64,000 nt of DNA. Source: Heterodontus francisci. Its lineage: Eukaryota. Positions 2,831 through 41,537 of the stretch are shown here, in pieces. The first letter of the stretch is position 1, and each line of letters starts with the position of its first letter. The position numbers and the translations under genes are program-made. Where the stretch lies: NCBI RefSeq assembly GCF_036365525.1, contig NC_090382.1, forward strand, positions 107,542,372 through 107,606,371, given 5' to 3'. A model generated the notes under the pieces. The model was not told where the DNA came from. It saw nothing but the letters and a program-made list of their open reading frames with translations, and did not search any database.

Positions 2831-3222
2831 ATTCCTTCTGCACTCTTTCCATTGCCTTGATGTACTTCCTTAATAAAGCAAGACTCACAAAACTCGGTGT
2901 AAGAATGTGAAACTCGCTACCAAGAGCAGTAGTTGAAATGAATTGCATAGATGCATTTAAGGGGAAGTTAGATAAATGCATGAGAGATAAAAGAATCGAA
3001 GATTTTGTTGATAGGGTGAGGCGATGAGGGGTGGGAGCAGGCTTATGTGGAGCATAAACACCGGAAGAGACCTGATGGGCTGAATGGCCTGTTTCTGTGC
3101 TGCATACTTGATGGAATTCTATGTAACTGCACCCTAATCAGTTACAATATCCAGAGCAAAGCTAGAAAACTTGCCATACTGGTTGGACTCGAGTTGATTC
3201 ATGAATTGTCACATGATCTTCC

Positions 3223-3288
3223 AAAACTCAGTCTCAAAAAGCAACCTTTCCTTGGCAACTGGTGACTCTGACACTTGTGACCAACCAG
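3223..3288 (+). promoter_or_regulatory. S-X-X2-Y-like module M1 (degenerate X2 and Y)
   Basis: AAAAC(3223)-N16-ACCT-N7-GCAAC(3255)-N3-TGACTCT(3263)-N11-CCAACCAG. Upstream spacing is identical to M2-M5. Confidence 0.55.
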
Positions 3289-4494
3289 TGCTTTGTATGA
3301 CGGTTTTTGCTGCTGTGGTTTCTTCTGCCCCCTCCTCCTCCTTTAAATGAGAAATCTCCAAGTAAGCTCTGTAGTTTGCTTTTGAGAGAAACTGGGACTT
3401 TCAGAGACGCCTTCCAGAACGGGGAAACAAGAGGTTTTTCCGCCATTCCCAGAGTCTGACATCTCTCACCAGCAGCAGATCTCTGATTGTTAAACAGTTC
3501 GGAAGGGTGGGTGGAAGTGGATGCGGTCAAACTCAAGATTTGGCTGATTTGGAAGGGATGGGTACCGTGCTGAGAATGTGGTGGCGGGGTATCTTGATCA
3601 GCCATTGAGAGGCTGTACGGGCTGGAAGGTTTGAATGGCATCCATTTGCCCTTATGTTCCTGGATCGAAAGAGGCCCAACCAGCCACACTTTGCTGACCA
3701 CCCCCATCCCCCCCACTTCACCCTCCCTTCCCCCCACACCACAGCTAACCCCACCGCAAAGCAAAACAGTCTGCCACAGCTCACTGCCAGACCTCACACA
3801 TGAGGAATGGATGTGTGGGTGAGTCACTCGAGGGCTGATTCTGTCCATGGGGTCCCTTTTAGGGAAGAGTCTAGAACTGAGGGTCCAGAATTTTAAAGAA
3901 ATGGTGCAACATTCAGAAAGCTCGAGTCTAGATTATCCATTGTAGAGGAACAGGATCCACTTGTCTTAAATATGAACAGGCCTCCACCCACCACACCCTG
4001 ACCCTGAGCTAAAATTAAATTAGAGGGTCATTTGCTTTATTCTGGCATGTTTCCCCCATCTCTGCCCAGGGGAGCAGTGGTCAGTGAGCTACTACCGTAG
4101 GCCAAGGAGACCCAGAGCAATCTAGCGTTACCGTAGGTTACTGCACCGATAGAGCAATCCAATAAGCTGCAGGCCTTTGAACATTTCCCAATGAAGTAAA
4201 GAAAGAACTTGCATTTCTATGGCGCCTATCCTCAGGACGTCCAAAGTACTTCACAGCCAAGCAAATAATTTTTTGAAGTGCAGCCAACTTACACACAGAA
4301 AGCTCAAACAGAGCAATGTGTTAAATGACCAAATAATCTGTTTTAGTGATGTTGTTTGAAGGATAAATATTGGTCCATGACTGTGGGGAGAATTCTCCTC
4401 ACTCTTCAAAATAACGCAATGGGGACTTTTACATCCATCGGGGAGAGCAGACGGGGCCTCAGTTTAACATGTCATCCGAAGGACGGTACCGACA

Positions 4495-6007
4495 ACAGTG
4501 CAGCACACCCTCATTACTACCCCTCCAACAGTGCAGCACACCCTCATTACTGCCCCTCCAGCAGTGCAGCACACCCTCATTACTACCCCTCCAACAGTGC
4601 AGCACACCCTCATTACTGCCCCTCCAACAGTGCAGCACACCCTCATTACTACCCCTCCAACAGTGCAGCACACCCTCATTACTGCCCCTCCAACAGTGCA
4701 GCACACCCTCATTACTGCCCCTCCAACAGTGCAGCACACCCTCATTACTGCCCCTCCAACAGTGCAGCACACCCTCATTACTGCCCCTCCAACAGTGCAG
4801 CACACCCTCATTACTACCCCTCCAACAGTGCAGCACACCCTCATTACTACCCCTCCAACAGTGCAGCGCTCCCTCATTACTACCCCTCCAAAAGTGCAGC
4901 ACACCCTCATTACTACCCCTCCAACAGTGCAGCGCTCCCTCATTACTACCCCTCCAAAAGTGCAGCACACCCTCATTACTACCCCTCCAACAGTGCAGCG
5001 CTCCCTCATTACTACCCCTCCGACAGTGCAGCACTCCCTCAGTACTGCCCCTCGGATAGTGCAGCACTACCTCAGTACTGCCCCTCTGACAGTGCAGCAC
5101 TCCCTCAGTACTGCCACTCTGACATTGCAGCACTCCCTCAGTACTGCCCCTCTGACAGTGCAGCACTCTCTCAGTACTGCCTCTCTGACAGTGCAGCACT
5201 CTCTCAGTACTTCCCCTCTGACAGTGCAGCACTCCCTCAGTACTGCCCCTCTGACAGTGCAGCACTCTCTCAGAACTTCCCCTCTGACAGTGCAGCACTC
5301 CCTCAGTACTGCCCCTCCGACAGTGCACCACTCTGTCAGTACTGCCCCTCTGACAGTGCAGCACTCTCTCAGTACTTCCCCTCTGACAGTGCAGCACTCC
5401 CTCAGTACTGCCCCTCTGACAGTGCAGCACTCTCTCAGTACTGCCCCTCTGACAGTGCAGCACTCACTTAGTACTGCCCCTCTGACAGTGCAGCACTCTC
5501 TCAGTACTGCCCCTCAGACAGTGCAGCACTCCCTCAGTACTGCACCTCTGAGTGCACCTTTCCCTCAGTACTGCCCCTCTGACAGTGCAGCACTCTCTCA
5601 GTACTGCCCCTCTGACAGTGCAGCACTCCCTCAGTACTGCCCCTCTGACAGTGCAGCACTCTCTCAGTACTGCCCCTCCGATAGTGCAGTACTCTCTCAG
5701 TACTGCCCCTCCGACAGTGCAGCACTCTCTCAGTACTGCCTCTCTGACAGTGCAGCACTCCCTCAGTACTGCCCCTCCGACATTGCAGCACTCTCTCAGT
5801 ACTGCCCCTCCGACAGTGCAGCACTCTCTCAGTACTGCCCCTCTGACACTGCAGCACTCTCTCAGTACTGCCCTTCCGACAGTGCAGCACTCTCTCAGTA
5901 CTGCCCCTCTGACACTGCAGCACTCTCTCAGTACTGCCCCTCTGACAGTGCAGCACTCTCTCAGTACTGCCCCTCTGACACTGCAGCACTCTCAGTACTG
6001 CCCCTCC
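4495..6007. repeat. 33-bp minisatellite (about 45 units) expanded inside a Deu-domain SINE
   Basis: Unit (a/g)acagtgcagcac(a/t)ccctca(t/g)tact(a/g)cccctc(c/t); 11-aa periodic ORFs in several frames; SINE sequence continues on both sides (4200-4495, 6012-6035). Confidence 0.95.
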
Positions 6008-6032
6008 ATTGTTTGCTCAAGTCTCTGGAGTG

Positions 6033-8402
6033 GGACAAGGGATATAGAGGATAGTACAAGGAAAAAATAGGAGGCTTATGGCAGATTCAAAGTGCTGCAA
6101 ACAGTGGTGGCCCCAGAGGAGTGTCGAAAATGTAGGGGGATTCTTAAAAAAGTAATGAGGTAACGAAGAAGAGACATGAAAAAACACTGGTGGGCAAGAT
6201 AAAGGAAAATCCCAAGGTATTTTATAAGTATATTAAGGGCAAGTGGATAACCTGGGTAAGAGTAGAGCCCATTGGGAACCAAAGTGGCAATCTGTGTGTG
6301 GAGCTGAAGGACATAGGTATGTTTTTAAACGATAACTTTTCATCTGTGTTCACTATCGAGAAGGACGATGTAGGTGTAGAGATCAGGGAGGGTGATTGTG
6401 ATATACTTGAACAAATTCGCATTGAATTGAAGGAGGTATTAGCTGTTTTAACAGGCTTAAAAGTGGATAAATCCCCAGGCCCAGATCTGATGTAACCCAG
6501 GCTGTTATGAGAGGCAAGGGAGGAGATAGCAGGGGCTCTGACACAAATTTTCAAATCCTCTCTGGCCACAAGAGAGGTACCAGAGGATGGGAGGACAGCG
6601 AATGTGGTACCATTATTCAAGAAGGGTAGAAGGGATAAACCAGGTAATTACAGGCCAGTGAAGCCAACATCAGTGGTTGGGAAACTATTGGAAAAATTCT
6701 GAGGGACAGGATTAATCTCCACTTGGAGAGGCAAGGATTAATCAAGGATAGTCAGCATGGCTTTGTCAGGGGGAGATCATGTCAAACAAATTTGATTGAA
6801 TTTTTCGATGAGGTGACTAGGTGTGTAAATGAGGGTAAAGCAGCTGATGTAGTCTACATGGACTTCAGTAAGGCTTTTGATAAGGTCCCACATGGGAGAT
6901 TGGTTAAGAAGGTAAGAGCCCATGGGATCCAGGGCAATTTGGCAAATGGGATCCAAAATTGACTTAGTGGCAGGAGGCAGAGGGTGATTGTCAAGGGTTG
7001 TTTTTGCGAGTGGAAGCCTGTGACCAGTGGTGTACCGCAGGGGTCAGTGCTGGGACCCTTGCTGTTTGTAGTGTACATTAATGATTTAGACGTGAATATA
7101 GGAGGTATGATCAGTAAGTTCACAGATGACACGAAAATTGATGGTGTCGTAAATAATGAGGAGGAAAGCCTTAGATTACAGGATGATATAGATGGGCTTG
7201 TAAGATAGGCGGAGCAGTGGCAAATGGAATTTAATCCTGAGAAATATGAGGTGATGCATTTTAGGAGGACAAACAAGGCAAGAGAATATATAATGGATGG
7301 TAGGACCCTAGGAAGTACAGAGGGTCAGAAGGACCTTGGTGTACTTGTCCATAGATCACTGAAGGCAGCAGCACAGGTAGATAAGGTGGATAGGAAGACA
7401 TATGGGATACTTGCCTTTATTAGCTGAGGCACAGAATATAAGAGCAGGGAGGTTATGATGGAGCTGTATAAAATGCTAGTTAGGCCACAGCTGGAGTACT
7501 GTGTACAGTTCTGGGCACCACACTATAGGAAGGATGAGATAGCACTGGAGAGGGTGCAGAAGAGATTCATCAGGATGTTGCCTGGGCTGGAGCAGTTCAG
7601 CTAGGAAGAGAGACTGGAAAGGCTAAGGTTGTTTTCCTTAGAGCAGAGAAGGCTGAGGGGGGACGTGATTGAGGTATACAAAATTATGATGGGCATTGAT
7701 AGGGTAGAGCGGCACAGTGGCGCAGTGGTTAGCACCGCAGACTCACAGCTCCAGCGACCCGGGTTCAATTCTGGGTACTGCCTGTGTGGAGTTTGCAAGT
7801 TCTCCCTGTGTCTGCGTGGGTTTTCTCCGGGTGCTCCGGTTTCCTCCCACAAGCCAAAAGACTTGCAGGTTGGTAGGTAAATTGGCCATTATAAATTGCC
7901 ACTAGTATCGGTAGGTGGTAGGGAAATATAGGGACAGGTGGGGATGTGGTAGGAATATGGGATTAGTGTAGGATTAGTATAAATGGGTGGTTGATGGTCG
8001 GCACAGACACGGTGGGCCGAAGGGCCTGTTTCAGTGCTGTATCTCTAAAACTAAAAACTTAGATAGGAAGAAGCTTTTTTCTTTAGTGGAGGGGTCAATA
8101 ACCAGGGGGCAGGAGGTTTAGAGGGGATTTAAGGTGAGGGGCAGGAGGTTAAGAGGGGATTTGAGGAAAGATCCTTTCACCCAGAGGGTGGTTGGAATCT
8201 GGAACACACTGCCTGAAGAGGTGGTAGAGGCAGGAACCCTCACATTTAAGAAGTATTCAGATGAGCACTTGAAAGGCCATAGCATACAAAGCTACGGGCC
8301 AAGTGCTGGAAAATGGGATTGGAATAGATTGGCCTGATGGCTTGCATGGACACGGTGGGCCGAAGGGCCTGTTTCTGTGCTGTGTAACTCAATTACTCTA
8401 TG
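6033..8402 (+). mobile_element. CR1 (HER1-like) LINE, 5'-truncated, degraded, with HE1 SINE inserted
   Basis: [33 protein letters not shown] and SKFTDD motifs; stops; microsatellite-like tail. Confidence 0.92.
7709..8060 (+). mobile_element. HE1-like V-SINE
   Basis: A box TGGCGCAGTGG, B box GGTTCAATTC, V-domain GTGGAGTTTGCA.GTTCTCCC, CR1-type 3' tail GGGCCGAAGGGCCTGTT. Confidence 0.9.
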
Positions 8403-8489
8403 AACCCACTACTTGCTGTGTTAATGTGTAATCTGCTACTCCTGCACAATATCAAGGACATCATCTGGCTCACTGTCACGTGACTCAAC

Positions 8490-8552
8490 AAAACACAAGC
8501 TTCGTTGAAAACCTGCCCCTGACAACTAGTGAGTCACTGAACAGCCAATTGG
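8490..8552 (+). promoter_or_regulatory. S-X-X2-Y-like module M2
   Basis: AAAAC-N16-ACCT-N7-ACAAC-TAG-TGAGTCA(8530)-N8-CCAATTGG(8545). Confidence 0.65.
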
Positions 8553-8729
8553 CGTTCTCCTGTTTGGGTTTTCTCCCCTTATTATTGGTTTCACTCACAG
8601 CAGATGTGAAACTGTTGAACACACACAGAAACAAGACGACCTCTGTGTTCTGGCTTTGTGCCAACACTTGGCTCTCAGTTAGTCTCGAACTTTCTTCACC
8701 TCTTGGTCATAAAACAGTGTGGAATCAAA

Positions 8730-9125
8730 TATAGAAACAGAAACATTCAGAATAGTAGGAGGCCATTCATCTCCTTCGAGCTTGTGCCACCATTCTGTAT
8801 CTTAACTCTATTTACCCACCTTAATGTTGTAACCCTTCATCTGTTACCCAACAAAACTCTCAATTTCACTCTTGAAAAAACCAACCTCCAAGCCTCATCA
8901 GCTTTTTCGGGGAGAGAGTTCCCGAGTTCTACTCTCCTTTACATGAAGAAGTGTTTACTGACATCACCCCTGAATGGCCTAGCTCGCATTTTAAGGTTCT
9001 TCCCCCTTGTTCTGGACTCTTCCATCAGGGGAGGTAGTTCCTCTTGATCTATGCTGTCAAATCCTTTAATCATTTTAAACACCTCAATTAGATCATTCCT
9101 TAATCTATACTCAAGGGAACACAAG
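8730..9125 (-). mobile_element. CR1 LINE 3' fragment
   Basis: RLRNDLIEVFKMIKG..TRG..KHFF; CR1 ORF2 C-terminus. Confidence 0.8.
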
Positions 9126-9160
9126 CCAGCGTGGGGGTGAACTATGTAGGAAATTCCATC

Positions 9161-9290
9161 TTAAAAGCAAAATACTGCGGATGCTGGAAATCTGAAATAT
9201 AAACAAAAAATGCTGGAAATATTCAGAAGGTAAGGCAACATCTGTGGAGAGAGGAACAGAGTTAACGTTTCAGGTCGATGACATAGTTCA
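9161..9290 (-). mobile_element. Penelope-like terminal-repeat fragment
   Basis: Reverse complement of the 130-bp element at 19897-20026. Confidence 0.65.
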
Positions 9291-9299
9291 GATGTTGTT

Positions 9300-9760
9300 G
9301 CTTGTGGTTCCCTGGGTAGCCCTCTCATCTCGGAGTCAGACAGTTGTGGGTTTAAGCCCCACTCCAGAGACTTGAGCACAAAATCTAGGCTGACACCCCC
9401 AGTGCAGTACTGAGGAAGTGCTGCACTGTCAGAGGTGCTGTCTTTCAGATGAGATGTTAAACAGAGGTCTGGTCTGCCCTTTCCAGTGGATGTAAAAGAT
9501 CCCATGGCCACTATTTCACAGCAGTGCAGGGGAGTTCTCCCCAGTGTCCTGGGGCCAATACTTATCCCTCAACCAACATCACTAAAACAAATTATCTGGT
9601 CATTTATCACATTGATGTTCATGGGATCATGCTGTGTGCAAACGGGCTGCTGCATTTGCTACATTAAGGCAATGTTTACCCTTTTAAGGAGTACTTCACT
9701 GGCTGTATAGCTCTCTGGGACATCCCGAGGATGTGAAATTCACTACATAAATGCATGTTT
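9300..9760 (+). mobile_element. Deu-domain SINE (SacSINE1-like), near full length
   Basis: tRNA-like head, GATGTAAAAGATCCCATGGC core and L2-like tail. Many other copies (4200-6035, 14560-15815, 16697-16785 + 25770-26135, 41495-41900). Confidence 0.75.
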
Positions 9761-10299
9761 ATTCTGTTTGGTCGCAGGTTTGTGTTGAGTTAGCTGGACT
9801 CAACTAGGGAAGAGTTGGGGTACTGCTTGGCCAGAGAAATTCAGCCAGGGCTCCTACTTTTGATCACCACTTGGTCAAATAGCTTGCCGCCACCACTCAG
9901 GGTGGCAGTACACTGAGAGGGGGGAGGTGGGGGCAGTGGGGTTGGGGGGGAAATGGCGGAGCAGGAGAGTTAGAAAAATCAGCCAATGTTCTCCATCGCT
10001 ATTGGGTGCCACCTGCCAAAGGGGAATTGGTCTCGGGTGGCAATAGCTCCTGAAAACTCACCACCACCAGCCGGTCACACACGTGAAATATGGCCACTCG
10101 ATTCGGGGCCGAGGCATGTGCTCGACAGCTGTGGAATTGCACCCCAACATAGAGTCAGTGCCTTCAGACACTGAAAGAAGAACCTGTGTTATTTTCCAAG
10201 TTTCACATCCACAGGATGTCTCTGAGTGGTTTGCCACAAATGGTTTAATTTTTTTCAAAATGCTGGTCACTGCAGTTTAGTAAGAAAAGGTGACCAGTA

Positions 10300-11220
10300 T
10301 TACAACAACAACGTGCATTTACATAATGCCATTAACGCAGTAAAACATCCCATGGCGCTTCACAGGAGTGTTAGCAAACAAAATAGGACACCGAACCACA
10401 TAAGGAAATATTAGGTCAATTAACCAAAAGCTTGGTCAAAGAGGTAGGTGTTAAGGAGGAAAGCGAGGTAGAGAGGTGGAGAGGTTTAGGGAGGGAATGC
10501 CAGAGCTTAGGGCCCAGGCAGCTGAAGGCTGCCAATGGTGAAGCAATGAAAATCAGGTATGTTCGAGAGGCCAGAATTAGAGGAGCAGAGAAATCTCGGG
10601 GGTTTGTGGGGCTGGAGGAGATTACAGAGATAGGGAGGGAGGGAGGGGTGAGGCCATGGAGGGATTTGAAAACAAGGATGAGAATTTTAAAATCAACATG
10701 TTGCTTGTAGGTCAGTGAGCACATGAGTGATAGCGGAATGGGATTTGTTGCAATTCGAGGGCAGCCAAGTTTTGGATGGCCTTAAGTTTATGGAGATGGG
10801 AAGTCAGACAGGAGAGCACTGGAATAATCAAGGCTTGAGGTAACAAAAGCATGGACAAGGGTTTCTGCAGCGGATGAGCTGAGGCAGAGGCAGAGTCGAG
10901 TGCTGTTACAGAGGTGGAAATAGGCAATCTTGGTGATGGTGCGGATGTATGATCGGAAGCTCATCTCCGGGTCAGATAAGACACCAAGGTTGCGACCAGT
11001 CTGGTTCGGCTCTCAAACAGTTGCCAGGGAGAGGGATGGAGTCGGTGGCTAGAAAACGGAGTTTGGAGCGGGGAGCGAAGACAATGGCTTCAGTCTTCCC
11101 AATATTTAGTTGGATAAAATTCTGCGCATTCAGTACTGGATGTTGGACAAGCGATGTGACAATTCAGAGGCCTTGGAGGGGTCGAGAGATGAGGTACTGA
11201 GGCAGAGCTGAGTGTTGTCA
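10300..11220 (-). mobile_element. L2 LINE 3' fragment (first unit of a local tandem duplication)
   Basis: DFKILILVFKSLHGL L2 C-terminal motif on the minus strand; paralogous to 11400-13670 and 13855-14410. Confidence 0.8.
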
Positions 11221-11263
11221 CATTATGTAGAATGTTGGCTTAGCTTCTGTCACCTGATGCTAT

Positions 11264-11326
11264 AAAACATGATCTCAAGCAGAGACCTCTCCCCAGCAAC
11301 TAGTGAGTCACACAACAGCCAATCAG
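11264..11326 (+). promoter_or_regulatory. S-X-X2-Y-like module M3
   Basis: AAAAC-N16-ACCT-N7-GCAAC(11296)-TAG-TGAGTCA-N8-CCAATCAG. X box CCCAGCAACTAGTG resembles the MHC II X box CCTAGCAACAGATG. Confidence 0.72.
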
Positions 11327-11399
11327 AGTTGACTGGGTTTATCTTGCTAAGATGCTGTGATGGTGCCATCTGTCTGTAGCTGGCAGCACTGCAGCCACA

Positions 11400-13670
11400 A
11401 CAAAAAGAACAACTTGGATTTATATAGCACCTTTAATTCAGCACTGTGTCCCAAGTAGCTTCACAAGAACGTCATACAACAAAATTTGACCCCGAGTCAG
11501 ATAAGGGGATACTAAGACAGGTGACCAAAAACTTGCGCAAAGAAGTTTTAAGGAATGTCTTAAAGGAGAAGAGAGAAATATACAGGCGGAGAGGGTGGGA
11601 ATTCCTGAGCTTCGGGCTCGGGCAGCTGAAGGTACAGCCACCAGTTGTAGACCACTGAAAATCAGGGATTCTCAAGAGGCCAGAATTGGAGGAGCACAGA
11701 GATCCCAGAGGATGGTAGGGCTGGAGAAGATTACAGAGATTGGGAGGGAGCGAGGCCATGGAGGGATTTGAAAACAAGGTTAAGAATTTTATTTTTTTAA
11801 ATTTATTTTTATTGATAAATACAGCACTGAGAGAGACCCTTCGGCCCACCAAGTCTGTGCCGACCAACAACCACCCCATTATACTAATCCTACATTAACC
11901 CCATATTCCTCATTACAGCCTTGGTTCAAACATGGACAAAAGAGCTGAACTCAAGAGGTGAGGTGAGAGTGACTGCCCTTGACATCAAGGCAGCATTTGA
12001 CCGAGTATGGCATCAAGGAGCCCTAGCAAAACTGAGGTCAATGGGAATCAGGGGGAAAACCCTCCGCTGGCTGGAGTCATACCTAGCGCAAAGGAAGATG
12101 GTTGTGGTTGTTGGAGGTCAATCATCTGAGCTCCAGGACATCACTGCAGGAGTTCTTCAGGGTAGTGTCCTAGGCCCAACCATCTTCAGCTGCTTCATCA
12201 ATGACCTTCCTTTAATCAAATGGTCAGAAGTGGGGATGTTCGCTAATGATTGCACGATGTTCAGCACCATTCGTGACTCCTCAGATATTGAAGCAGTCCG
12301 TGTAGAAATGCAGCAAGACCTGGACAATATCCAGGCTTGGGCTGATAAGTGGCAAGTAACATTTGCACCACACAAGTGCCAGGCAATGACCATCTCCAAC
12401 AAGAGAGAATCTAACCATCTCCCCTTGACATTCAACGGCATTACCATCGCTGAATCCCCCACTATCAACATCCTGGGGGCTACCATTGACCAGAAACTGA
12501 ACTGGAGTAGCCATATAAATACCGTGGCTACAAGAGCAGGTCAGAGGCTAGGAATCCTGTGGCGAGTAACTCACCTCCTGACTCCCCAAAGCCTGTCCAC
12601 CATCTAGAAGGCACAAGTCAGGAGTGTGATGGAATACTCTCCACTTGCCTGGATGGGTGCAGCTCCAACAACACTCAAGAAGCTCGACACCATCCAGGAC
12701 AAAGCAGCCCGCTTGATTGGCACACCATCCACAAACATTCACTCCCTCCACCACCGACGCACAGTAGCAGCAGTGTGTACCATCTACAAGATGCACTGCA
12801 GCAATGCACCAAGGCTCCTTAGACAGCACCTTCCAAACCCGTGACCTCTACCAACTAGAAAGACAAGGGCAGTAAATACATGGGAACATCACCACCTGCA
12901 AGTTCCCCTCCAAGTCACACACCATCCTGACTTGGAACTATATCGCCGTTCCTTCACTGTCGCTGGGTCAAAATCCTGGAACTCCCTTCCTAACAGCACT
13001 GTGGGTGTACCTACCCCAAATGGACTGCAGCAGTTCAAGAAGGCAGCTCACCACCACCTTCTCAAGAGCAATTAGGGATGGGCAATAAATGCTGGCATAG
13101 CCAGTGACGCCCACATCCCAAGAAAGAATAAAAAAAGAATTCCCTACCACATCTCCACCATTCACCTAAATCAAGATGTTGCTTGACCGGGAGCCAATGT
13201 AGGTCAGTGAGCACAGGGATGATGGGTGAATGGGACTTGGTGCGAGTTAGGACATGGGCAACAGAGGTTTGGATGACCTTGAGTTTATGGAGGGTGGAAT
13301 GTGGGAGACCAGTTAGGAGTGCATTGGAATAGTCAAGTCTGGAGGTAACAAAGACATGAATGAGGATTTCAGCAGCAGAAGAGCTGAGGCATTGGGCAAT
13401 GTTACAGAGGTGAAAATAGGCAGCCTTGGTGATTGCGGATTATATGGTTAAAAACACAACTCAGGATCAGATAGGGTGTCAAGATTGCAAATAGTCTGGT
13501 TCAGCCTCAGACAGTTGCCAGGGAGAGGGAGTTGGTGGCTCGGAAATGGAGTTTGTGGCGAGACTGAAGACGGCCTTCCCAATATATAATTGGAGGAAAT
13601 TTCTGCTCATCCAGTACTGGATGTTAGACTAGCAGTGCGATAGTGCGATAGAGCTGGGTGTCTTCAGTTT
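11400..13670 (-). mobile_element. L2 fragment interrupted by a truncated HE1 SINE, itself interrupted by a LINE
   Basis: L2 breaks at about 11790 and resumes at about 13168; HE1 tail 11791-11910 resumes at 13139. Confidence 0.75.
11911..13138 (+). mobile_element. 5'-truncated CR1/L2-group LINE, family B, copy 2
   Basis: ALDIKAAFDRVWH, GVLQGSVLGP, MFANDC; AATAAA plus A tail; short attcc duplication at the junctions. Confidence 0.92.
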
Positions 13671-13711
13671 ACATGTGGAATGTTGGCTTTGCTTCTGTCA
13701 CCTGATGCCAT

Positions 13712-13774
13712 AAAACAGAGTATCAGCCAGAGACCTCTACCCGGCAACTAGTGAGTCACACAACAGCCAATCAG
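13712..13774 (+). promoter_or_regulatory. S-X-X2-Y-like module M4
   Basis: AAAAC-N16-ACCT-N7-GCAAC(13744)-TAG-TGAGTCA-N8-CCAATCAG. Confidence 0.72.
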
Positions 13775-14676
13775 TATTTTGATTTTATTCATTTGACTGG
13801 ATTTGTGTTCCTTTGATGATGGTGCCATCTGGCTGTAGCTGCAGCCATAGCAAAAACAACAACAACTTGGATTTATGTAGCACCTTTAACACAGTAATGT
13901 GCCCCAAGCCGTTTCACAAGAACGTAATAAAACAAAATATGATACCGAGTGAGATGAGGAGATATTAGGGCAGGTGATCAAAGCTTGTTCAAAGAAATAG
14001 GTTTTAAGGAGCATCTTAAAGGAGGAGAAGGAGGAACAGAGGTGGAGAGGTTTAGGGAGGGAATTCCAGAGCTTTATACCTCAGGCAGCTGAAAGCACAG
14101 CCGCCAATGGTGGAGCAATTAAAATCAGGGTTACTCAAGAGGCCAGAATTTGGAGGAGCACAGATATCAAGGGGGTTGTCAGGCTGGAGGAGGTTACAGA
14201 GATAGGGAGGGGTGAGGCCATGGAGGGATTTGAAAACAAGGATGTGAATTTTAAAATTGAGGCATTGCTAGACTGGGAGCCAACATGGATCATCAAGCAT
14301 GGGGATGCGGAGCGAATGGGACTTGGTGCGAGTTGGGACATGGGCAGCAGAGTTTTGGATGATCTCAAGTTTATGAAGGGTTGAAGATGGGAAACCGATC
14401 AGGGGAACATTGATTAAAGTAAGGTGTTTATTAAAGCTTATTACCAATCTGTTGAACTAACTCTCTACTCTGGATAACTCCCAACATCTCTATATGCTAC
14501 CTGAATGTGTCAAGATACTTCTGAGCATTTGACACTTCAATCACTTTTCAGCAATAGTAAATGACTTGCATTTATATAGCACCTTTCACCACCTTAGGAT
14601 GTCCCAAAGCACTTTACAATTAATTACTTTTGAAGTATAGTCACTGTTGAAATGTAGGAAATGCAGCAGCCAATAT

Positions 14677-15575
14677 TGTCATGCAGGCTCCCACCTGCCA
14701 AGAATAAGGCACATTGCTTTTGCCATATAAACATTGATTTTGAACTGTTGCTGGAGCAGGGAAATGACTTGTTGAACAGATCAGCTGTGGCTGGATAAAA
14801 TATTAGCATACTAACATGACGGTACTGGTGTGGACAAAGGACCACTCCCTGACATTCAACCCACAATGGATGTTGATCACCGGATAGTGAGGGGGTGGGG
14901 AAGCACATTCCAGGGCCTGCTGGGGTGATGTAATCCACAGGAGCCAGGACTGGTTGGACCAGCTGGTCACGTGACTAACTGGCTGTTCCAGAGTTTTTTG
15001 AACTAGCCACAGCGTGTTTGGTCAAATAAAGAATGTTTGCTCCTGGACAGAGAAGACCTCCCCTGTCTGCTCCCATCTCTTTCTCACAAGCCTCTGAATT
15101 CACTGAAGACACATGAACCCCAAGAGAGAAAAGTCTCCTACAGTGAATAAGGTTTAAGAAGAATACTGGGCCCCAACGAAAAGCAAGATCTACCTACAAT
15201 CAAGGGCTCTACAGTGAGCTCAAAGAACCATTACAAAAACTCTTCAGATATTGCCTCAAACTTTTCCACTTTAGTTTTTTCCTCTGTTCTTTTCTGTCTC
15301 TATTTGCACGTGTATATCGCGTATGCATGCTAGTGTGGGTGCACCATGTAGGCGTCAACCGAATTAGAGTTTAAGTTGAAGTTGAATAAATTTCAACTTT
15401 TCTTCTTTAAACCTAAGAAAGCTTGTTTGTGCTGGTTTCTTTGCCTTATAATTGGAAAACAGTGAACAAGGATTCACCAAGGCGGAGCTAAAAACACGGT
15501 GTGTTTAAAAATTAAACCCAGTTACGGTGAAGGCTGAAAGGGAACCCTAGACACCTTTCTCACCTGGTCGTAACA
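14677..15575 (+). mobile_element. Solo Gypsy LTR (same family as 16786-25769, opposite orientation)
   Basis: TG...CA ends; 4-bp TSD ATAT (14673-14676 / 15576-15579); host SINE rejoins cleanly; internal AATAAA. Confidence 0.9.
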
Positions 15576-15851
15576 ATATGCACACAGCAAGATCCCACAA
15601 TTAGCAATGTGATAATGACCAGATAATCGAGTTTTAGTGATATTGGTTGAAGGATAAATATTGGATGCAGGACACACCGGGGATAATCCCCTCCTCTTTC
15701 TTCGAAATAGGGGCAAGGGATCTTTTACATATAATGTCTCAACCGAAAGATGGCACCTCTGGGGCAGTGCAGCCCTCCCTCAGTACTGCACTGGGATATC
15801 TAGGGAATGGGACTTAAAATAACAGAAGGAGCTTTGTTTACCACCTTCTGC

Positions 15852-15914
15852 AAAACACAATCTCAACCGGAGACCTCTCCCTGGCAACTGTTGAGTCACA
15901 CAGGAACCAATCAG
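15852..15914 (+). promoter_or_regulatory. S-X-X2-Y-like module M5
   Basis: AAAAC-N16-ACCT-N7-GCAAC(15884)-TGT-TGAGTCA-N8-CCAATCAG. Confidence 0.7.
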
Positions 15915-17346
15915 CGTTTATCATTTGGATTAGCAGCATTGCAGATGGCGCCTCAACTCTCAGAGCTTCATTTCACTCCCCCTCTCTGCGTGTGTTTCCT
16001 AAATCCGGGGCATGTCTAAATGTTTATCATGTGTCTAAAACACGGCATTTCTCCAATCAACCTTAATTGTACTTTCTGCTCCATTATCTGTCTGCTTTTC
16101 TATATTCCAGCTGTGTGTCTCTATATGTATAAGTGCCTCTGCGTCCTCTGCTGGCAGTGATTATTGTAGCATAGAAACAATTACCATAAAATCCAGACTG
16201 TGGCACGCACCTTCACATATAAGTCAGCCACTCATTTTCATTGGGGTGTTATGTAACTCCAAGGGTCGGTACAGCATGTATCACAGTACTGAGCCAGAGT
16301 TATAGATTTAATCTATAATCATAGAATCACCCAGCAAATGAGGCCATTCAGCCCATCATGTCATCTTTGGAAAGTCTATCCAATTCGTCTCACTTCCCTG
16401 CTCTTTCCCCATGGCACTGCCAGTTTCTCTCTCTCTATATATCCAAGTATAATCTGTATTGAAGTAACCCTAAAGGGCCTTTAACAGAGTAAAGTGTCCC
16501 AAGACGCTTCATAGCAGTGTAATCAAGGTCAAAAGCTGATGCCAAGCTGGAGGAGATAGTAGGTCAAAAACTTGGTCAAAGCGATTGATTTTAAGGATGA
16601 AGGAGAGGCGGTGAGGTTTAGGGAATGAATTCCAGAGCTGAGGACTTGGGTGGCTAAAGGCACAGCTGCAAATGAAGGGGTGGTAGTAATATGAAAGACT
16701 TGCATTTCTATAGCACCTTTTGCGACTTCAGGATGTCCCCAAGAACTTTACAGCTGATGAACTACTTTTGAAGTGTAGTCACTGTTGTCATGACCAGGTG
16801 AGAAAGAAGTCTAGGGTTCCCTTTCAACCTTCACCTGGTCTTACTGTAACAGGATTTAATTTTAATTTTAGCTCCCCCTTGGTGAATCCTTGTTCACCAC
16901 TTTCCAATTTTCAGGCAAAGAAACCAGCACAAACAGGCTTTCTTAGGTTTAAAGAAGAAAAGTTCAAATTTATTAAACTTAAACTCTAATTCAGTTGATG
17001 CCTACGGATACACAATGCACCCACGCTAGTATGCATATGTGATACACATGCAAATAGAGACAGAAAAGAGCTGAAGAAAAATAAAGTGGAAAGGTGTGAG
17101 GCAATATCTGAGGAGTTTTTGTTACGGTTCTTCGAGCACACTGTAGAATCCTTGATTGTAGGTAGATCTTGCTTTTCGTTGGGGCCCAGTATTCTTCTTA
17201 AACCTTGTTCGCTGTCGGAGACTTTTCTCTTTTGGGGTTCATGTGTCTTCAGTGGATTCAGAGGCTTGTGAGAAAGAGATGGGAGCAGACAGGAGAGAGA
17301 TCTCAGTCCAGGAGCAAACAGACACTCTCCCCAAACTGTTTGTACA

Positions 17347-26979: not shown

Positions 26980-28775
26980 CCCCTTCTCACATTGTCCTCT
27001 AGAATGTCTGTTCACTTGTGAGCAAACTCCCTTGTTATCGATGAGCTTATTGTGGATGGTCACATCAACATCCTGATCTTGATGGAAACCTGGCTGAGGG
27101 GTGAAGGCACCTTCCCCTGAAATAAAGCCTCCTCACCTGGCTATACCTTCTACCACTTGCTCTGCCCAGACCGTGGCACTGACAGTGAGGCTCATCTCAC
27201 TGAATCACACTTTGGCCTGTCTCCTTCCTCTGGCACTTTCTGATCCTTTGATCATCACACCTTGTTCCACTCCTTTCACCTCTCATTTAAAATCCTCATT
27301 CTCTACCACCCACCCAACTACCACAGCAAGTTTCTCATTGATAGCCTCACTGCTTTCCTCCCTCAGTCTCTGCTCCGAGCGACTCCGCGTCCTTGGTGAT
27401 TTCAACCTCCATCTCAACTCATCATGCTCTCTCACATCTGGGGTTCACTGCCCTCCTATCCTCCCTTAATCTCACCCTCCAAATAAACTCCCCAACTCAC
27501 ATTCACAGCAGCCCTTGACCTTGCTATCTCACGCAGCCTCTTTACTCATATTGTGTCAGTCTCAGATAAGAACATCTTTGATCATTTCCTTGCTCCACTC
27601 ACATCCTCCTTACCCCTCCCAACTCTACTGCCTTCTGAGTCCACCGCTAGAAAAAACTCTCACAAGTCACTTACAACAGCACTTCCAGATTCCCAACTGT
27701 CTAGCTGTTAGCCCACCATTCACAACATCTCTGCATCTGTTCAATCACACCCTCACCCCATGCCCTTGTCCTCATTAAAGCCATTATTCTCTCTCATCAC
27801 GGTCGCTCCCCCGCTATATCATCTCTGCTCCCTTAAGTTCAAAGGACACAGACTGGAACAGATATGGTGGACAACTGGTTGAGCCATCCACCGCCAGATC
27901 TGGCTGCACCACATAAAGCGCGATCAGGCCCTGCTCTCATCTGCTGAAAATGCTCACTATTCCAGAATCATCCTGGAATGCTAAGATAACCCTGGCTTCT
28001 TTTTTCCACTTCTTAAACCCCTCCCCATCTCCTCCATTCTCATCTCCAAGTGCGAGGAGCTCATTGTCCCTAAGACTGAGACCATCTGCCTTCGTCACTT
28101 CCCTCCCTTCCCGTAGCCCACTGGGTCAAACTTCCTCCTCCCTACCCTGAACTTGCATCTTTCTCTAGTTTCTCTACCTCCCCGAGCTCATCTTATTCAT
28201 GAGACACACCTCCAACTCCCTTTTCCCACCAAACTATTGACCTCCCAACTTCCTTCACTAGTCCTTTAGCTGATATTGATAACTGCTCCCTCTCCTCAGG
28301 TGCTCTCTCCTTAATATCTGCCATCACCCTCTTCTCAAAAAACCATCCTTGATCCTACCATCCTTGCAAAATAATCCCCATCTTCAACCTCTTTCTTCTC
28401 GAAGGTTATTTCCCAAATCCGTTCCCATCTTTCCTTAACTCCTTGTTTTAATCCTATGATTATAGTACACTAAAACAGCCCTCTTTGAAACCACAAATAA
28501 TATCCTATGACCAAACTATACTTCCTTGTCCTTCTCGACCAATCTGGAGCCTTTGACATGGTTAACCACATCATCCTCCTGCAACACCTCCCCTCTTGTT
28601 GTCCAGCTGGATGGGACTGCCCTTGTCTAATTCCAATCCGTCCATGCGGTCATAACCAGACATCACTTGTAATGGCTTCTCTTCCTGCTACCGCATTGTT
28701 ACCTCTGGTGTTCCCCAAGGATCTGGCCTTCGCCCACACCTATTTCTCATCCAAATGCTGTCCCTCAGCAACATT
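26980..28775 (+). mobile_element. Old, degraded L2 LINE (APE and RT remnants)
   Basis: Pyrimidine-rich; LMETWL, VLGDFNLH, LVLLDQSGAFDMVNH and TSGVPQG remnants. Confidence 0.75.
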
Positions 28776-29184
28776 AATAACTTGCATTTATATAATGCCT
28801 TTAGTATAGTAAAACGTCCCAATGCTCTTCACAGGAATATTATTAGAGAAATTTGACACCCAGACACAATTATGACAGGTGATCAAAAGTTTGGTCACAG
28901 CGATGGGTTTTAAGGAATGTTTTAAAGGAGCAGATAAACAGGCAGAGAGGTTTAGGGTGGGAATTCCAGAACTTGAGCAGCTGATTAAATCAAGAATGCT
29001 GAAGAGATCAGAACTGTAGATAGTTCCGAGCGTTAGAGTTGGAGGTTGGCTGTATTTCCAGCTCATCTATGACTGGCAGAGACTGGGCTGCATTGAGGGC
29101 AGTCTCAGTGACAACATTCTCCCTGGAGTACAGTTCTAGGTAGTGCTCAACCCAGCGGTCCATTTGTTTGCGTTGGTCAGTGCT

Positions 29185-35770: not shown

Positions 35771-35884
<114 letters not shown>

Positions 35885-36261
35885 TTAAAAACTTTTCACG
35901 TTAGTGGCAGGGTGGTATATCCCACAAGCCAATGAATTGAACAGAGCAGCAATGTCCAAATTGCAGCTTGCCAGCGCCTGAAACTCGCCTGTGTTTAATA
36001 TTTCTCACTGGCTGGCTTGTTCGGGTTGAAAATGGACGTTCTTAACATCGACATCTCATGGATGGCTAAATCCTAAATCAGAACATGCCCGTGACTAGAA
36101 ATCCACAATCCTTTTTAAATGCAATTTTAAGAAGCTGCATTTATATAGTGACCTCAAGATATCATAAAGAACTTTACAGCCAATCAAAGCACCGTTGACT
36201 CAGACTGTCAGCCTGGATTATGTGCCCCAGTTCCTGGAGTGGGACTTTAAAAACTCACGAG

Positions 36262-36465
36262 TAAAATAATGCAGATGCAGGAAATCTGAAAATAGAAAAT
36301 GCTTGAATTACTCAGCTGCATCTGTGGAAAGAGAAATAGAGATAGCTCGCGTTTTAGGTTAATGGCTGTTTCATCAGTTTTAATGTAAAGTTATCGACTG
36401 AAACGTTAATTCTCTCTCTTCACAGATGCTGCCAGATCAGAGTATTTCCAGCATTTTCTGTTTTT
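36262..36465. mobile_element. Head-to-head pair of Penelope-like terminal fragments (RPS14 intron 3)
   Basis: Minus-strand copy followed by a plus-strand copy of the 130-bp element, forming an imperfect palindrome. Confidence 0.6.
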
Positions 36466-36623
36466 AAGAGGTAAGTGTGCAACCTGCCAAACCATGGCTG
36501 ACACCATTTTGATGTCAAACTAGCAGCATGGGATCTTTTTCGTCCATGTGAGGAGGCAGGCAGGGCCTGGGTTTAAAGCCTCAGCTGAAAGACGACACCT
36601 CTAACGGTGTAGCATTTTAAATC

Positions 36624-36755
36624 GTTTGTACGTGACCAAGCGTCCCTGTCAGCCGAAGAGTGCTAGACTAACAAGGATAGTATGAAACGGGTTCCTTTCT
36701 GCAGGGGGAACGACATCAACAGCACTGAGCAGCTGCGACGTAACTTAACCTGCAC
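36624..36755 (-). ncRNA. SNORA63: H/ACA snoRNA, SNORA63 (E3)-like, RPS14 intron 3 copy
   Basis: Close paralogue of the intron 4 copy; H box AAAGGA, ACA box and both guide pockets intact. Confidence 0.9.
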
Positions 36756-36811
36756 ATAATCCGGAGCTCTTCCTGTAATCTTTGGGATATGATTATTTAC
36801 AGGCTGGGAAA

Positions 36812-37560
36812 AGGTGAACTTGTCCACTTTGGCAGGAAGAATAGAAAAGCAGTATATTATTTAAAGCGCAAGAGACTGCAGAACTCTGCAATAGAGGGAT
36901 CTGGGTGGCCTGGTACATGGACGACAAAAGGTTAGTATGCAGGTATAGCAAGTGATTAGGAAGGCAAATGTTGAAGAATGTTGTCGTTTATCATAAGGAG
37001 AATCAAGCACAAAAGTAGGAAAGTTTTACTACAGTTATACAGGCCGTTGGTGAGACCTCATCTGGAATACGATTTTGGTCTCTTTACTTAAAGGATATAA
37101 TTGCATTAGAAGCAGTTTAGAGAAGGTTCACTCAACTGATTCCTGGGATGAAGGGGTTATCTTACGAGGAAAGGTTGGCCCTGTATCCATTAGAAGAATG
37201 AGAGGTGATCTTATTGAAACATACAAGATCCAGAGGGGATTGGACATGGTGGATGCTTCCCCTCATAAACGAGAATAGAACCAGGGGACACAGGTCTCCC
37301 ATTTAAGGAGATGAGAAATTTTTCTCTCAGAAGGTGGTTAGTCCGTGGAATTCTCTTCCCCAGAGAGCAGTGGAGACAGGGTCATTGATTATTTTTAAGG
37401 CTGAGTTAGATTGACTCTTTTGTCAATCAAGAATCTAAGGTTATAGCAGATAGACAGCAAAGTAAAGCGAAGGCATAATCAGATCAACCATGATCTAACC
37501 AAATGGCGGAGCAGGCTGAGGGGCCGAATGGCCTACGCCTGCTCCAAATTATTATGTTCA
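36812..37560 (+). mobile_element. Degraded CR1 3' fragment (RPS14 intron 3, antisense to host)
   Basis: RRMRGDLIETYKI; CR1 tail gagggccgaatggcctac. Confidence 0.8.
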
Positions 37561-37865
37561 TACAATGTTAAATCTGTTACAGGTTACAACGCTGTTTGGA
37601 AATGCATTTAGCTTGCACCTGTTGTCACCGCATCACAAAAAAAATTAAAGACGGATAAAAAGCATCAATGGGAAAAGAGTTCCAACTTTTAAATCCTTTT
37701 TTGGGTACTACTCATTACTTTTGTCCCACCGTTTCCGATTCCAAAGCATACACGCACTTTCAATCTCCTGCTCCCTCAAAGCAAAACTTTTCATTGCAAG
37801 TTAGATTTAATAAGGCATTAAGAGGCTACACACTGCCCAGAGACTGAAACAGTATCGATATTTCA

Positions 37866-38153
<288 letters not shown>

Positions 38154-38697
38154 TCAACAAATGCATGCATGACAAAAAATAAACACAACCGGCACCAAAC
38201 AGTGATCCTTTCGCTGGGCCATTCACAGGAATCTTGCTCCGTTACCAGAGTTTAAAACCATCTTGATGAGGGAAATCAGGAATAGTTAGTTTATTTGGCA
38301 ATCTTTCTTCACCTCCGGGCTATGATGAACACCTGGTGAGTTGGGACTTCACTGCACATCAGTGCCGTCTTAACTGGATGCATTCCCAAGTCACCAGGTA
38401 ATGATTAGTCACTGGGTGAGGACACTACTTGATTCACCAGGGGCTAATTACAGGGCTCCAGGTTGAGTGAGTGTCAGCAAGCTATTTGATTGGCGAGACC
38501 CTCACAGCCTAACCCCTACCAGACATCCAAAAAAAAAGCACAGGTCAGAGTGTCAACTATGGCTACCTCCGAGACACGCAGGGCAACTGTGGTGCCCAAG
38601 CTGAAGATCAGCTAACAGTGTAAATTAGATTCAGCAGTGCAGAGGACAGTGATTTTACTTTAGGCCACCAGGGCAGTGAGGCAGAGAGTTCTAGATT

Positions 38698-38828
38698 GTT
38701 TGTACGTGACCAAGCGTCCCTGTCAGCCGGGGGTGCTGGACTGACAAGGATAGTATGAAACGGGTTCCTTTCTGCAGGGGGAACGACATCAACAGCACTT
38801 AACAGCTATGACGTAACTTTTCCTGCAC
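38698..38828 (-). ncRNA. SNORA63: H/ACA snoRNA, SNORA63 (E3)-like, RPS14 intron 2 copy
   Basis: Same architecture; substitutions fall mostly in loops or keep pairing through G-U; boxes intact. Confidence 0.88.
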
Positions 38829-39682
38829 TCTGGGGTGCTTTCTGTAATCTATGGGTACTGACGACAGAATCGGTGTGTTAATCTGGTCAATTTTTACATT
38901 AATACTCTGCACAATTCAGCTGGAGAAATCTGCAGATGTGTTCAAGATGTACAGCCCAGCAGTGCTGGCTTGAGGCTGGGGGAGGAGGCGTTTCATGGAC
39001 TCCTCAGTGCATCGCCCAAGTGATCCTTCAACGCAAGTGTCGAGTGGCAGCAGGTGATTCAAATGCAGAAGGACACAGTTCAGCCCTATTCTGTGCTCAC
39101 CTCGCTATTCCCTCACCTACGGACACTGAATCGAGATCAGCATTCAATGTCAACCAATTTTCTCCCTTTAGCTAGCTATTGGTACTGAGACAGCTAACCC
39201 TACAGACCCGTGGCACCTTTTGGTATATACATTTTAGTGGGAAAACACTGAATGATATAGTACATGAGGCCATTCAGCCCATCGTTCCTGCTCTTTGAAA
39301 GAGCTAGCCAATCAGTCCCACCCCTGCACATGTTGCTTTCTCAAGCTATTGATTCAATTCCCTTTTGAAAGTTACTATTATATCTGCTTCCAACATCCTG
39401 TCAGGCAGTGCATTCCAAATCACAACCACTTACTGTGTGAAAAAAAATCCCATGTCCCGTCTGGCTCTTTTGCCAATTATCTTAAATCTCTGCCCTTTGG
39501 TTCCCAAATGCCCTGCACTGCAAACAGTTTCTCCTCATTTACTCTATCAAAACCCTTCAAGAATGATATATAAAAATGCAATTATCCACTGACTCAACCA
39601 GGGAGGCCTTTGCACCCCTTCACTAAGTGTACACAGAAAAGAGAAGACGGAGGGGTGACCTGACAGAGGTCTTTAAAATTAT

Positions 39683-39822
39683 TCTGAAGTTCTGAAGAAG
39701 GGTCTCTGACCTGAAACGTTAACTCTGCTTCTCTCTCCACAGATGCTGCCAGACCTGCTGAGTATTTCCAGCATTTCTTGTTTTTATTTCAGATTTCCAG
39801 CATCTGCAGTATTTTGCTTTCA
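39683..39822 (+). mobile_element. Penelope-like terminal fragment with intact minimal hammerhead core
   Basis: 13-bp TSD tctttaaaat(t/a)at; AGTT-CTGAAGA-AGGGTCtctGACCT-GAAA-CG-TT-AACT at 39688-39724. Confidence 0.7.
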
Positions 39823-39867
39823 TCTTTAAAATAATGATGGGGTTCGATAAGCTAAACATAGAGACGC

Positions 39868-40805
39868 AGTACATTAACGATTTAGATGTGAATATCGGAG
39901 GTATGATCAGTATGTTCGCAGATGATACGAAAATTGGTGATGCCGTAAATAGTGAGGAGGAAAGCCTTAGATTACAGGATGATATAGATGGGCGGAGCAG
40001 TGGCAAATGGAATTTAATCCCGAGAAGTGTGAGGTGATGCATTTTGGGAGGACTAACAAGGCAAGGGAATATACTATGGATCGTAGGACCCGAGGAAGTA
40101 CAGAGGGACCTTGGTGTACTAGACCATAGATCACTGAAAGCGGCAGCACAGGGAGAGGTGGTTAGAAAGACGTATGGGACACTTGCCTTTATTAGCCGAG
40201 GCATAGAATATAAGAGCAGGGCGGTTATGATGGAGATGTCGAAAACGCTAGTTAGGCCACAGCTGGAGTACTGTGTATAGTTCTGGGCACCACACTATAG
40301 GAAGGATATGATTACACTGAAGAGGGTGCAGAGGAGATTCACCAAGATGTTGCCTGGGCTGGAGCATTTCAGCTTTGAAGAGAGACTGAAAAAGCTAGGG
40401 TTGTTTCCCTTAGAGCAGAGAAGGCTGAGGGGGACATAATTGAGATATACAAAATTATGAGGGGCACAGATAGGGCAAATAGGAAGAAACTTTTTCCCTT
40501 AGCGGAGGGGTCAATAACCAGGGGGCATAGATTTAAGGTAAGGGACAAGAGGTTTAGAGGGGATTTGAGGACACTTTTTTTCACCCAGAGGGTGGTTGGA
40601 ATCTGGAACACTGCTTGTAGTGGTGACAGAGGCAGGAACCATCACAATATTTAAGAAGTATTTAGATGAGCACTTGAAACGCCATAGTATACAAGGCTGC
40701 GGGCCAAGTGCTGGAAAATGGGATTAGAATAGTTAGGTGCTTGATAGCCGGCACAGACACAATGGGCCAATGGGCCTGTTCCTGTGCTGTACAACTCTAT
40801 GACGT
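39868..40805 (+). mobile_element. CR1 3' portion (RPS14 intron 2, antisense to host)
   Basis: YINDLD..MFADDTKIG, LVRPQLEYC, TRGHRFK. Confidence 0.9.
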
Positions 40806-41285
40806 TTCCATTTATGAGGGAGACCAGAGCAGGTGGCCATTAACCAAAAGACAGTCACTAATAAATCCAATAGGGAATTCTGGAGAAACTTCTTTATTCA
40901 GTGGTGAGAATGTGGAACTCTCTCACAAGGAGAAGTTGACACAAGTAGCATAAATGTAGTTAAAGCAAAGTGAAATAAACATGAGAAAGGATTAGGACAT
41001 GCTGAAAGGGCAAGTTTTCAGAGGTATGAGGAGGCTCATATGGAACATAACCCAGTTGGCCCAAATGGCCTGTTTCTGTGCTGTAGATTGTACATACGTA
41101 CCGTGAGATTTAATGATTCAAGTATCACTGGGGAAGGTGTCGTACAGAATATTTGAAAACCACCAGCTCACAACACAAAATTTATCGAACCCTTTCAGAT
41201 GCTGCTTCACCTGCTGTGTATTTCCAGTGCTTTCTGTTTTTATTCCATAAATCTCTCCAAGTAGTATTGTTTAAACTCCTACTTA

Positions 41286-41537
<252 letters not shown>

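Follow-up and report, generated by a model that had tools for sequence, protein, structure and literature searches.

The 64,000-nt stretch of Heterodontus francisci DNA analysed here (contig NC_090382.1, positions 107,542,372 to 107,606,371 of the forward strand; hereafter the window) contains five copies, m1 to m5, of a block of about 100 nt, in an interval that we presume to lie between CD74 and RPS14. The initial annotation had read these blocks as an array of distal CD74 enhancers resembling the S-X-X2-Y modules found at class II genes of the major histocompatibility complex (MHC). Judged by sequence comparison, the blocks are on balance probably ordinary duplicated, repeat-associated intergenic DNA and not a dedicated MHC-type enhancer array. 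The five copies are paralogs, two of them are embedded in a duplicated unit made mostly of an L2 long interspersed nuclear element (LINE), the geometry of their motifs is non-canonical, and the motifs show no clear conservation in excess of neutral decay. We infer that none of the blocks serves as a dedicated CIITA/RFX enhanceosome.

Five paralogous copies of one block

The pattern AAAAC-N16-ACCT-N7-RCAAC-N3-TGASTCW had exactly five matches in the 64 kb, all on the + strand, at 3223, 8490, 11264, 13712 and 15852, and in four of the five copies (m2-m5) the extended pattern RCAAC-N3-TGASTCW-N8-CCAAT was also found. The pattern scan thus reproduced the five spaced motifs described in the initial annotation, with their coordinates, strand, identical spacing and the N8-CCAAT in four of them. 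Shuffled sequence was expected to give 0.00 matches, but this excess over chance is trivial, because the copies are homologous and it was their invariant columns that supplied the pattern. A profile hidden Markov model of the ~100-nt block, searched with nhmmer over the same 64 kb, recovered only m1-m5, with E values of 1e-22 to 1e-27, and the next matches had E values of 0.06 or higher. All copies are co-oriented and confined to 12.7 kb, with none in the other 51 kb of the window. Their homology spans ~100 nt, roughly from -17 to +66/+80 relative to AAAAC. The copies are:

3198..3300, + strand: block copy m1 (nhmmer E 2.7e-22)
8465..8564, + strand: block copy m2 (nhmmer E 1.2e-23), with a GACAAC half-site, TGAGTCA and CCAATTGG
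11239..11338, + strand: block copy m3 (nhmmer E 1.6e-27), with the 5'-truncated end of L2a on its left and the L2b 3' end on its right
13687..13786, + strand: block copy m4 (nhmmer E 2.8e-27), a duplicate of m3, 89% identical to it over 102 nt without gaps
15827..15926, + strand: block copy m5 (nhmmer E 1.4e-25), sharing 81-82% identity with m3 and m4 across 63-67 nt

The most degenerate copy is m1, with TGACTCT in place of TGAGTCA, CCAAC in place of CCAAT and 3 nt inserted just past the heptamer. Neither m1 nor m2 has an L2 neighbour, and another repeat abuts m5 at ~50 nt on its left side. To the right, the flanks of m1 (900 nt), m2 (240 nt) and m5 (400 nt) are unrelated to one another and to those of m3 and m4. 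The blocks had been described as lying in short unique islands between transposons; this holds for m1, m2 and m5, and there only by the criterion of uniqueness within the window, but not for m3 and m4, which lie inside a duplicated unit of ~1.1 kb.

This unit, 10706-11791, matches 13198-14253 with 73% identity over 1131 columns. Most of it is L2 LINE sequence, from the 3' part of the element: when its best stop-free - strand piece was compared with 1.84 billion proteins, all 11,020 matches were open reading frame 2 (ORF2) proteins of L2-type LINEs. We mapped the - strand L2 fragments by tblastn with 17 full-length L2 ORF2 proteins, which gave spans of 10485-11127 for L2a, 11526-11747 and 13167-13713 for L2b, and 13982-14531 for L2c. 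The elements around m3 and m4 are:

10302..11240, - strand: L2a, 3' part of ORF2 from the YADD-equivalent to the (TTG)n tail, left neighbour of m3 (tblastn E down to 2e-23, and strand reading)
11395..11781 (listed extent), - strand: 3' piece of L2b, beginning directly after the m3 island
11915..13140, + strand: CR1-like LINE fragment (tblastn-mapped extent 11915-13072), inserted into L2b and splitting it
13167..13713, - strand: 5' piece of L2b, reaching FHM*TEDTQLY (the YADD-equivalent), left neighbour of m4 (tblastn E down to 4e-29)
13855..14531, - strand: L2c, the third L2 3' fragment, directly after the m4 island

The resulting order is L2a, m3 island, L2b, m4 island, L2c, other repeats and m5 island. 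On the left, m3 and m4 are both flanked by L2 ORF2 on the - strand, and on the right both flanks enter the 3' end of the next L2 after 65-80 nt. Since m3 and m4 have these flanks in common, they are DNA-level duplicates. The 5' cut lies at one shared position in L2a, L2b and L2c, immediately upstream of the YADD-equivalent (at m4, FHM*TEDTQLY), and this likewise indicates that the unit was copied as DNA.

We propose that a single intergenic stretch of ~100 nt would have been copied several times over through local, tandem-like duplication in the repeat-rich DNA separating RPS14 from the presumed CD74, with at least m3, m4 and probably m5 copied within the ~1.1-kb unit of a 5'-truncated L2 LINE and an island of ~150 nt. 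AAAAC, ACCT, GCAAC, TGAGTCA and CCAAT would then be those columns that chanced to stay unmutated in all five copies. The locus resembles known local tandem or segmental duplications of LINE units in that its co-oriented copies lie 2-5 kb apart and the m3 and m4 units are 73% identical, with later insertions (the CR1-like LINE and SINE-like pieces, SINE standing for short interspersed nuclear element) splitting the units here. It differs from them in that m1 and m2 share just the ~100-nt block, and the units are not traceable through all five copies.

The motifs themselves are conserved to about the degree expected of such copies. Pairwise identity of the five copies within the 47-nt pattern is 62-83%. 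A mean pairwise identity of ~0.72 means that each copy keeps ~84% of the ancestral bases, and neutral decay should therefore leave 0.84^5 = 42% of the columns invariant, or ~20 of 47; the observed number was 21. Between m3 and m4, the block is 89% identical over 102 nt, compared with ~72% overall for the unit; the 40 nt of L2-coded sequence to its left are 90% identical, the pattern region itself is 83% identical, and 50-nt windows elsewhere in L2 reach 84-86%. The 81-82% identity of m5 to m3 and m4 does not exceed the value for L2b versus L2c (82%) and is near that for L2a versus L2c (76%). The three L2 fragments share 72-82% identity among themselves, and are no closer to each other than to an unrelated copy of L2 located at 55 kb (72-73%). 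The equal spacing of the motifs is accounted for as well, because the copies are paralogs without an indel in the 47-nt stretch; indels are present just after the heptamer in m1 and just after CCAATCAG in the other copies. In the initial annotation, divergent spacers at kept distances had pointed to stereospecific constraint on the motifs, an argument that does not survive the finding of paralogs with 62-83% identity, a near-neutral number of invariant columns and an L2 flank as conserved between m3 and m4 as the motifs. Old paralogous copies automatically display conserved words at fixed spacing with divergent spacers, and caution is warranted since such invariant words can spell plausible transcription-factor sites, especially beside a gene that invites this reading.

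Two copies carry further words. In m2, an internal 15-nt inverted repeat, CTGTCACGTGACTCA at 8473-8487 and TGAGTCACTGAACAG at 8530-8544, yields a CACGTG E-box and a second AP-1-like site, TGACTCA, at 8481-8487. Downstream of m1, the + strand has TTTAAAT at 3342-3348, ~60 nt past CCAAC, and a kappaB-like word, GGGACTTTCA, at 3394-3403; no ORF or conserved sequence follows these two words.

Origin of the block

Outside m1-m5, the profile matched best on the opposite strand, within L2a and L2b. At 15874-15891 (+), the m5 core CCTCTCCCTGGCAACTGT(T) agrees letter by letter with 18-19 nt of L2 sense sequence, present at 11017-11034 in L2a and at 13511-13528 in L2b (both - strand), and in L2 sense it encodes ..IPLPGNC... 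Aligned with the L2b sense strand, the block consensus was identical at 41 of 52 positions (z score of 6), and none of 1000 shuffles reached this score. Together, the 18-mer and the alignment would make the island a partial copy, in inverted orientation, of the L2 beside it, in the manner of twin priming or a fold-back; they would also make the GCAAC word read as an X1 box inherited coding sequence. Accepting this comparison, CCTCTCCCTGGCAACTGT, the most specific part of the block, may be inherited repeat sequence.

As in a 5'-inverted LINE insertion (twin priming) or a fold-back, the + strand island of m3 and m4 carries the 18-19-nt stretch and a weaker alignment of ~60 nt to the adjacent L2 sense strand. 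Unlike in these, the inverted piece would repeat what the direct piece already contains; moreover, the match covers little sequence and is nearly equalled by that of an unrelated CR1-like element. When every 220-nt window of the locus was scanned empirically, the L2 arms scored 16 and the CR1-like 3' region (12819-12865 and a copy near 48.2 kb) scored 15.5, with a gapped alignment different from that of L2. We regard these similarities as suggestive of a repeat origin of the block. CCTCTCCCTGGCAACTGT is identical in L2a, L2b and m5, sequences that are otherwise just 72-82% alike; this identity may be due to chance, to a conversion tract or to partial duplication in inverted orientation.

Other origins were considered and rejected. 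The - strand peptides of the block (DWLLCDSLVAGERSLLEIMFY and relatives) keep a V-x10-F spacing, and we asked whether the block is antisense coding sequence of the L2 reverse transcriptase. A Pfam search of these peptides gave nothing, tblastn with the 17 L2 ORF2 proteins had no match inside any block, and the block had no DNA similarity to the genuine L2 reverse-transcriptase piece at 28662-28787. The latter belongs to an L2 reverse-transcriptase fragment at 28513-28787 (+), cut off at 28763 by the antisense 3' end of another L2. A reading of the block as the head of a SINE was rejected too, as the SINE-like L2 tail occurs a third time at 10297 with no block upstream of it. A small RNA gene was rejected after Rfam gave no match over 1-22000 and RNAalifold folding of the blocks gave -1.5 and -7.4 kcal/mol for the two strands, with almost no covariation. 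A 70-aa + strand ORF over m5 had no match in the protein database, a result that is uninformative on copy number.

The blocks might instead be separately inserted fragments of a repeat that is dispersed and common genome-wide, either an L2 derivative or some other short element; we consider this distinctly unlikely. The region is saturated with LINE and SINE fragments, and the discrete ~100-nt homology with unrelated flanks in four contexts, the 18-19-mer identity to L2 sense together with the gapped match to the CR1-like 3' region, and the weak inverted repeats, internal or flanking, of m2 and m1 would all be consistent with such a family. Yet the true repeat families of the window are scattered and occur in both orientations, whereas the five blocks are co-oriented within 12.7 kb and absent from the other 51 kb. 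The common flanks of m3 and m4, which mark them as DNA-level duplicates, argue against separate insertions, and so do the missing L2 ORF2 protein match inside the blocks and the missing similarity to the antisense of the true L2 reverse-transcriptase piece.

Comparison with the MHC S-Y module

The S-Y module is a composite of 65-70 bp in which the S, X, X2 and Y boxes are tightly constrained in order, orientation and spacing (PMC2278383), with S-X distances of ~16 nt and X-Y distances of ~20-22 nt (PMC4374748). XY boxes under CIITA control have lengths of 46-50 bp, and the spacer sequences of human MHC-II promoters vary at preserved spacing (PMC4381081). In the blocks, an X1-like half-site is formed by GGCAAC or AGCAAC after CCTCTCCC-type pyrimidine tracts in m1, m3, m4 and m5, and by GACAAC in m2. 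An X2-like heptamer follows at N3 spacing in all five copies, as TGAGTCA, a TPA response element (TRE), in four and as TGACTCT in m1. The canonical X2 heptamer is TGCGTCA. An NF-Y site is present in m2-m5, with the context RRCCAATCAG, of the high-affinity type, in m3, m4 and m5.

The blocks are therefore like the S-Y module in having an RFX-type half-site with a pyrimidine tract, a basic leucine zipper (bZIP) heptamer 3 nt further on and a CCAAT box, all within ~60 nt, and like S-Y systems in having several copies per locus and a presumed neighbour, CD74, that is a classical target. Their architecture is different. In the S-Y module the Y box is inverted, as ATTGG on the X strand, at a fixed distance of ~18-20 nt (range ~18-22 nt) from X2; the blocks have in its place a CCAAT on the same strand as GCAAC, 8 nt past the heptamer (CCAAC in m1). 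No sequence of the canonical geometry GCAAC-N3-TGNNTCA-N10-30-ATTGG was found on either strand of the 64-kb window. The heptamer is a perfect TRE and not TGCGTCA-like. The S box of the module lies ~15-17 nt upstream of X and is related to it in sequence. The blocks have no apparent S-like box: the only invariant word at this distance is AAAAC, which seems to resemble neither the X box nor the S consensus, so that its sequence gives no support to the proposed role as an S-box analogue. Since neither the orientation nor the spacing of the Y box agrees, the blocks are not to be classed as S-Y modules. What stands of the X-X2-Y-like modules of the initial annotation are the X1 and X2 words at N3 in five of five copies and the NF-Y site in four of five; the membership in the S-Y family does not, owing to the orientation and distance of Y. 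As far as the sequence can tell, the resemblance to X1-X2-Y is real in words, but not in architecture.

CD74, the invariant chain, is the archetypal non-MHC target of the RFX/CIITA system. S-Y modules are present in its promoter and intron 1, and distal S'-Y' modules in the human class II region. From the arrangement of CD74 and RPS14 in human, we take CD74 to lie to the left of the window on the - strand and to turn its 5' end towards the window. The blocks would then presumably be upstream of CD74, within the CD74-RPS14 interval and inverted relative to CD74. This inversion of the whole block would be a further difference from the S-Y module.

With this setting, the blocks could be multiplied distal enhancers of CD74 that bind RFX, an AP-1/CREB-type bZIP factor and NF-Y, forming a lineage-specific variant of the S-Y module with Y inverted and one helical turn closer, and might recruit CIITA. 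We hold this to be unlikely, although several observations speak for it: the position upstream of the presumed CD74, the X1 and X2 words at the canonical 3-nt spacing in all copies, the RRCCAATCAG context in m3, m4 and m5, and the clustering of invariant columns in a discrete block with unrelated flanks. Distal and inverted X-Y copies are present upstream of class II genes too, as S'-Y' of HLA-DRA and X'-Y' of mouse E-alpha. Divergent spacers would be no obstacle, as they also diverge at kept spacing in human MHC-II promoters (PMC4381081). Against this explanation, the orientation and distance of Y break the defining geometry, the XY length is ~35-40 bp versus 46-50 bp, the heptamer is a TRE and not an X2 resembling the cAMP response element, and AAAAC seems unlike the S box. 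In addition, m1, the copy nearest to the presumed CD74, has lost both TGAGTCA and CCAAT, conservation shows no clear excess over that of the neutral L2 flanks, and the X1 core may be L2 coding sequence. From sequence, the failed Y geometry would lower the probability of RFX/bZIP/NF-Y enhancers without abolishing the idea.

Were the blocks RFX/NF-Y enhancers, they would naturally put to the test how rigidly the MHC enhanceosome is bound to its rules of spacing and orientation, and would show how expression of the invariant chain and of class II is co-regulated in the oldest jawed vertebrates. It is also rather improbable that the blocks are an exapted, locally amplified CD74 enhancer cluster that brings together RFX, an AP-1-type factor and NF-Y in a compact geometry differing from the S-Y arrangement conserved from sharks to mammals. 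Such a cluster would imply an alternative arrangement, tolerated by the enhanceosome or employed by a shark paralogue.

The words might also belong to generic enhancers of the AP-1/NF-Y/E-box type, or to core promoters of unannotated + strand non-coding transcripts, outside the RFX/CIITA pathway, an explanation that we find very improbable. The + strand order of E-box, RFX-like word, AP-1 site and CCAAT, to which m1 adds TTTAAAT and the kappaB-like GGGACTTTCA, would suit it, as would the co-orientation of all copies. It is contradicted by the absence of conserved sequence, ORF or RNA structure downstream of the blocks and by the E-box, whose core dinucleotide varies (CC, CG, CA) and which is absent in m5.

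Four observations weigh against the reading of the blocks as local duplicates of ordinary intergenic DNA. First, the invariant columns are clumped, with 7 runs versus ~12 expected (P 0.003; other measures P 0.016-0.03; the start of the region was chosen post hoc), which is weak evidence because this start was picked at an invariant run. Second, the block is discrete: outside ~100 nt the homology stops in m1, m2 and m5, whose right flanks of 240-900 nt are unrelated. Selection on the block alone would likewise give discrete blocks in these three copies, and selection on the motifs may therefore have acted; judged from the identities above, it is not demonstrated. Third, the L2 origin is insecure, as the CR1-like 3' region has a nearly equal score and no L2 protein match lies inside the block. 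Fourth, the composite RGYAAC-N3-TGASTCA with a YRRCCAATCAG-type NF-Y site beside the presumed CD74 is a notable coincidence.

Neighbouring features

The RPS14 coding exons, named as a neighbour in the initial annotation, were found on the - strand at 35.9-41.4 kb. We placed them as separate exons by short peptide words:

35860..41420, - strand: RPS14 coding exons (start ~41,420, end ~35,860; short peptide words)

On the - strand of the m1 island, 3237-3932 holds a low-complexity, stop-free frame of 232 codons. Between m1 and m2 lies a minisatellite (4356-6070) with a period of 33 nt and more than 43 copies of 83-98% identity, which produces long spurious ORFs in several frames.

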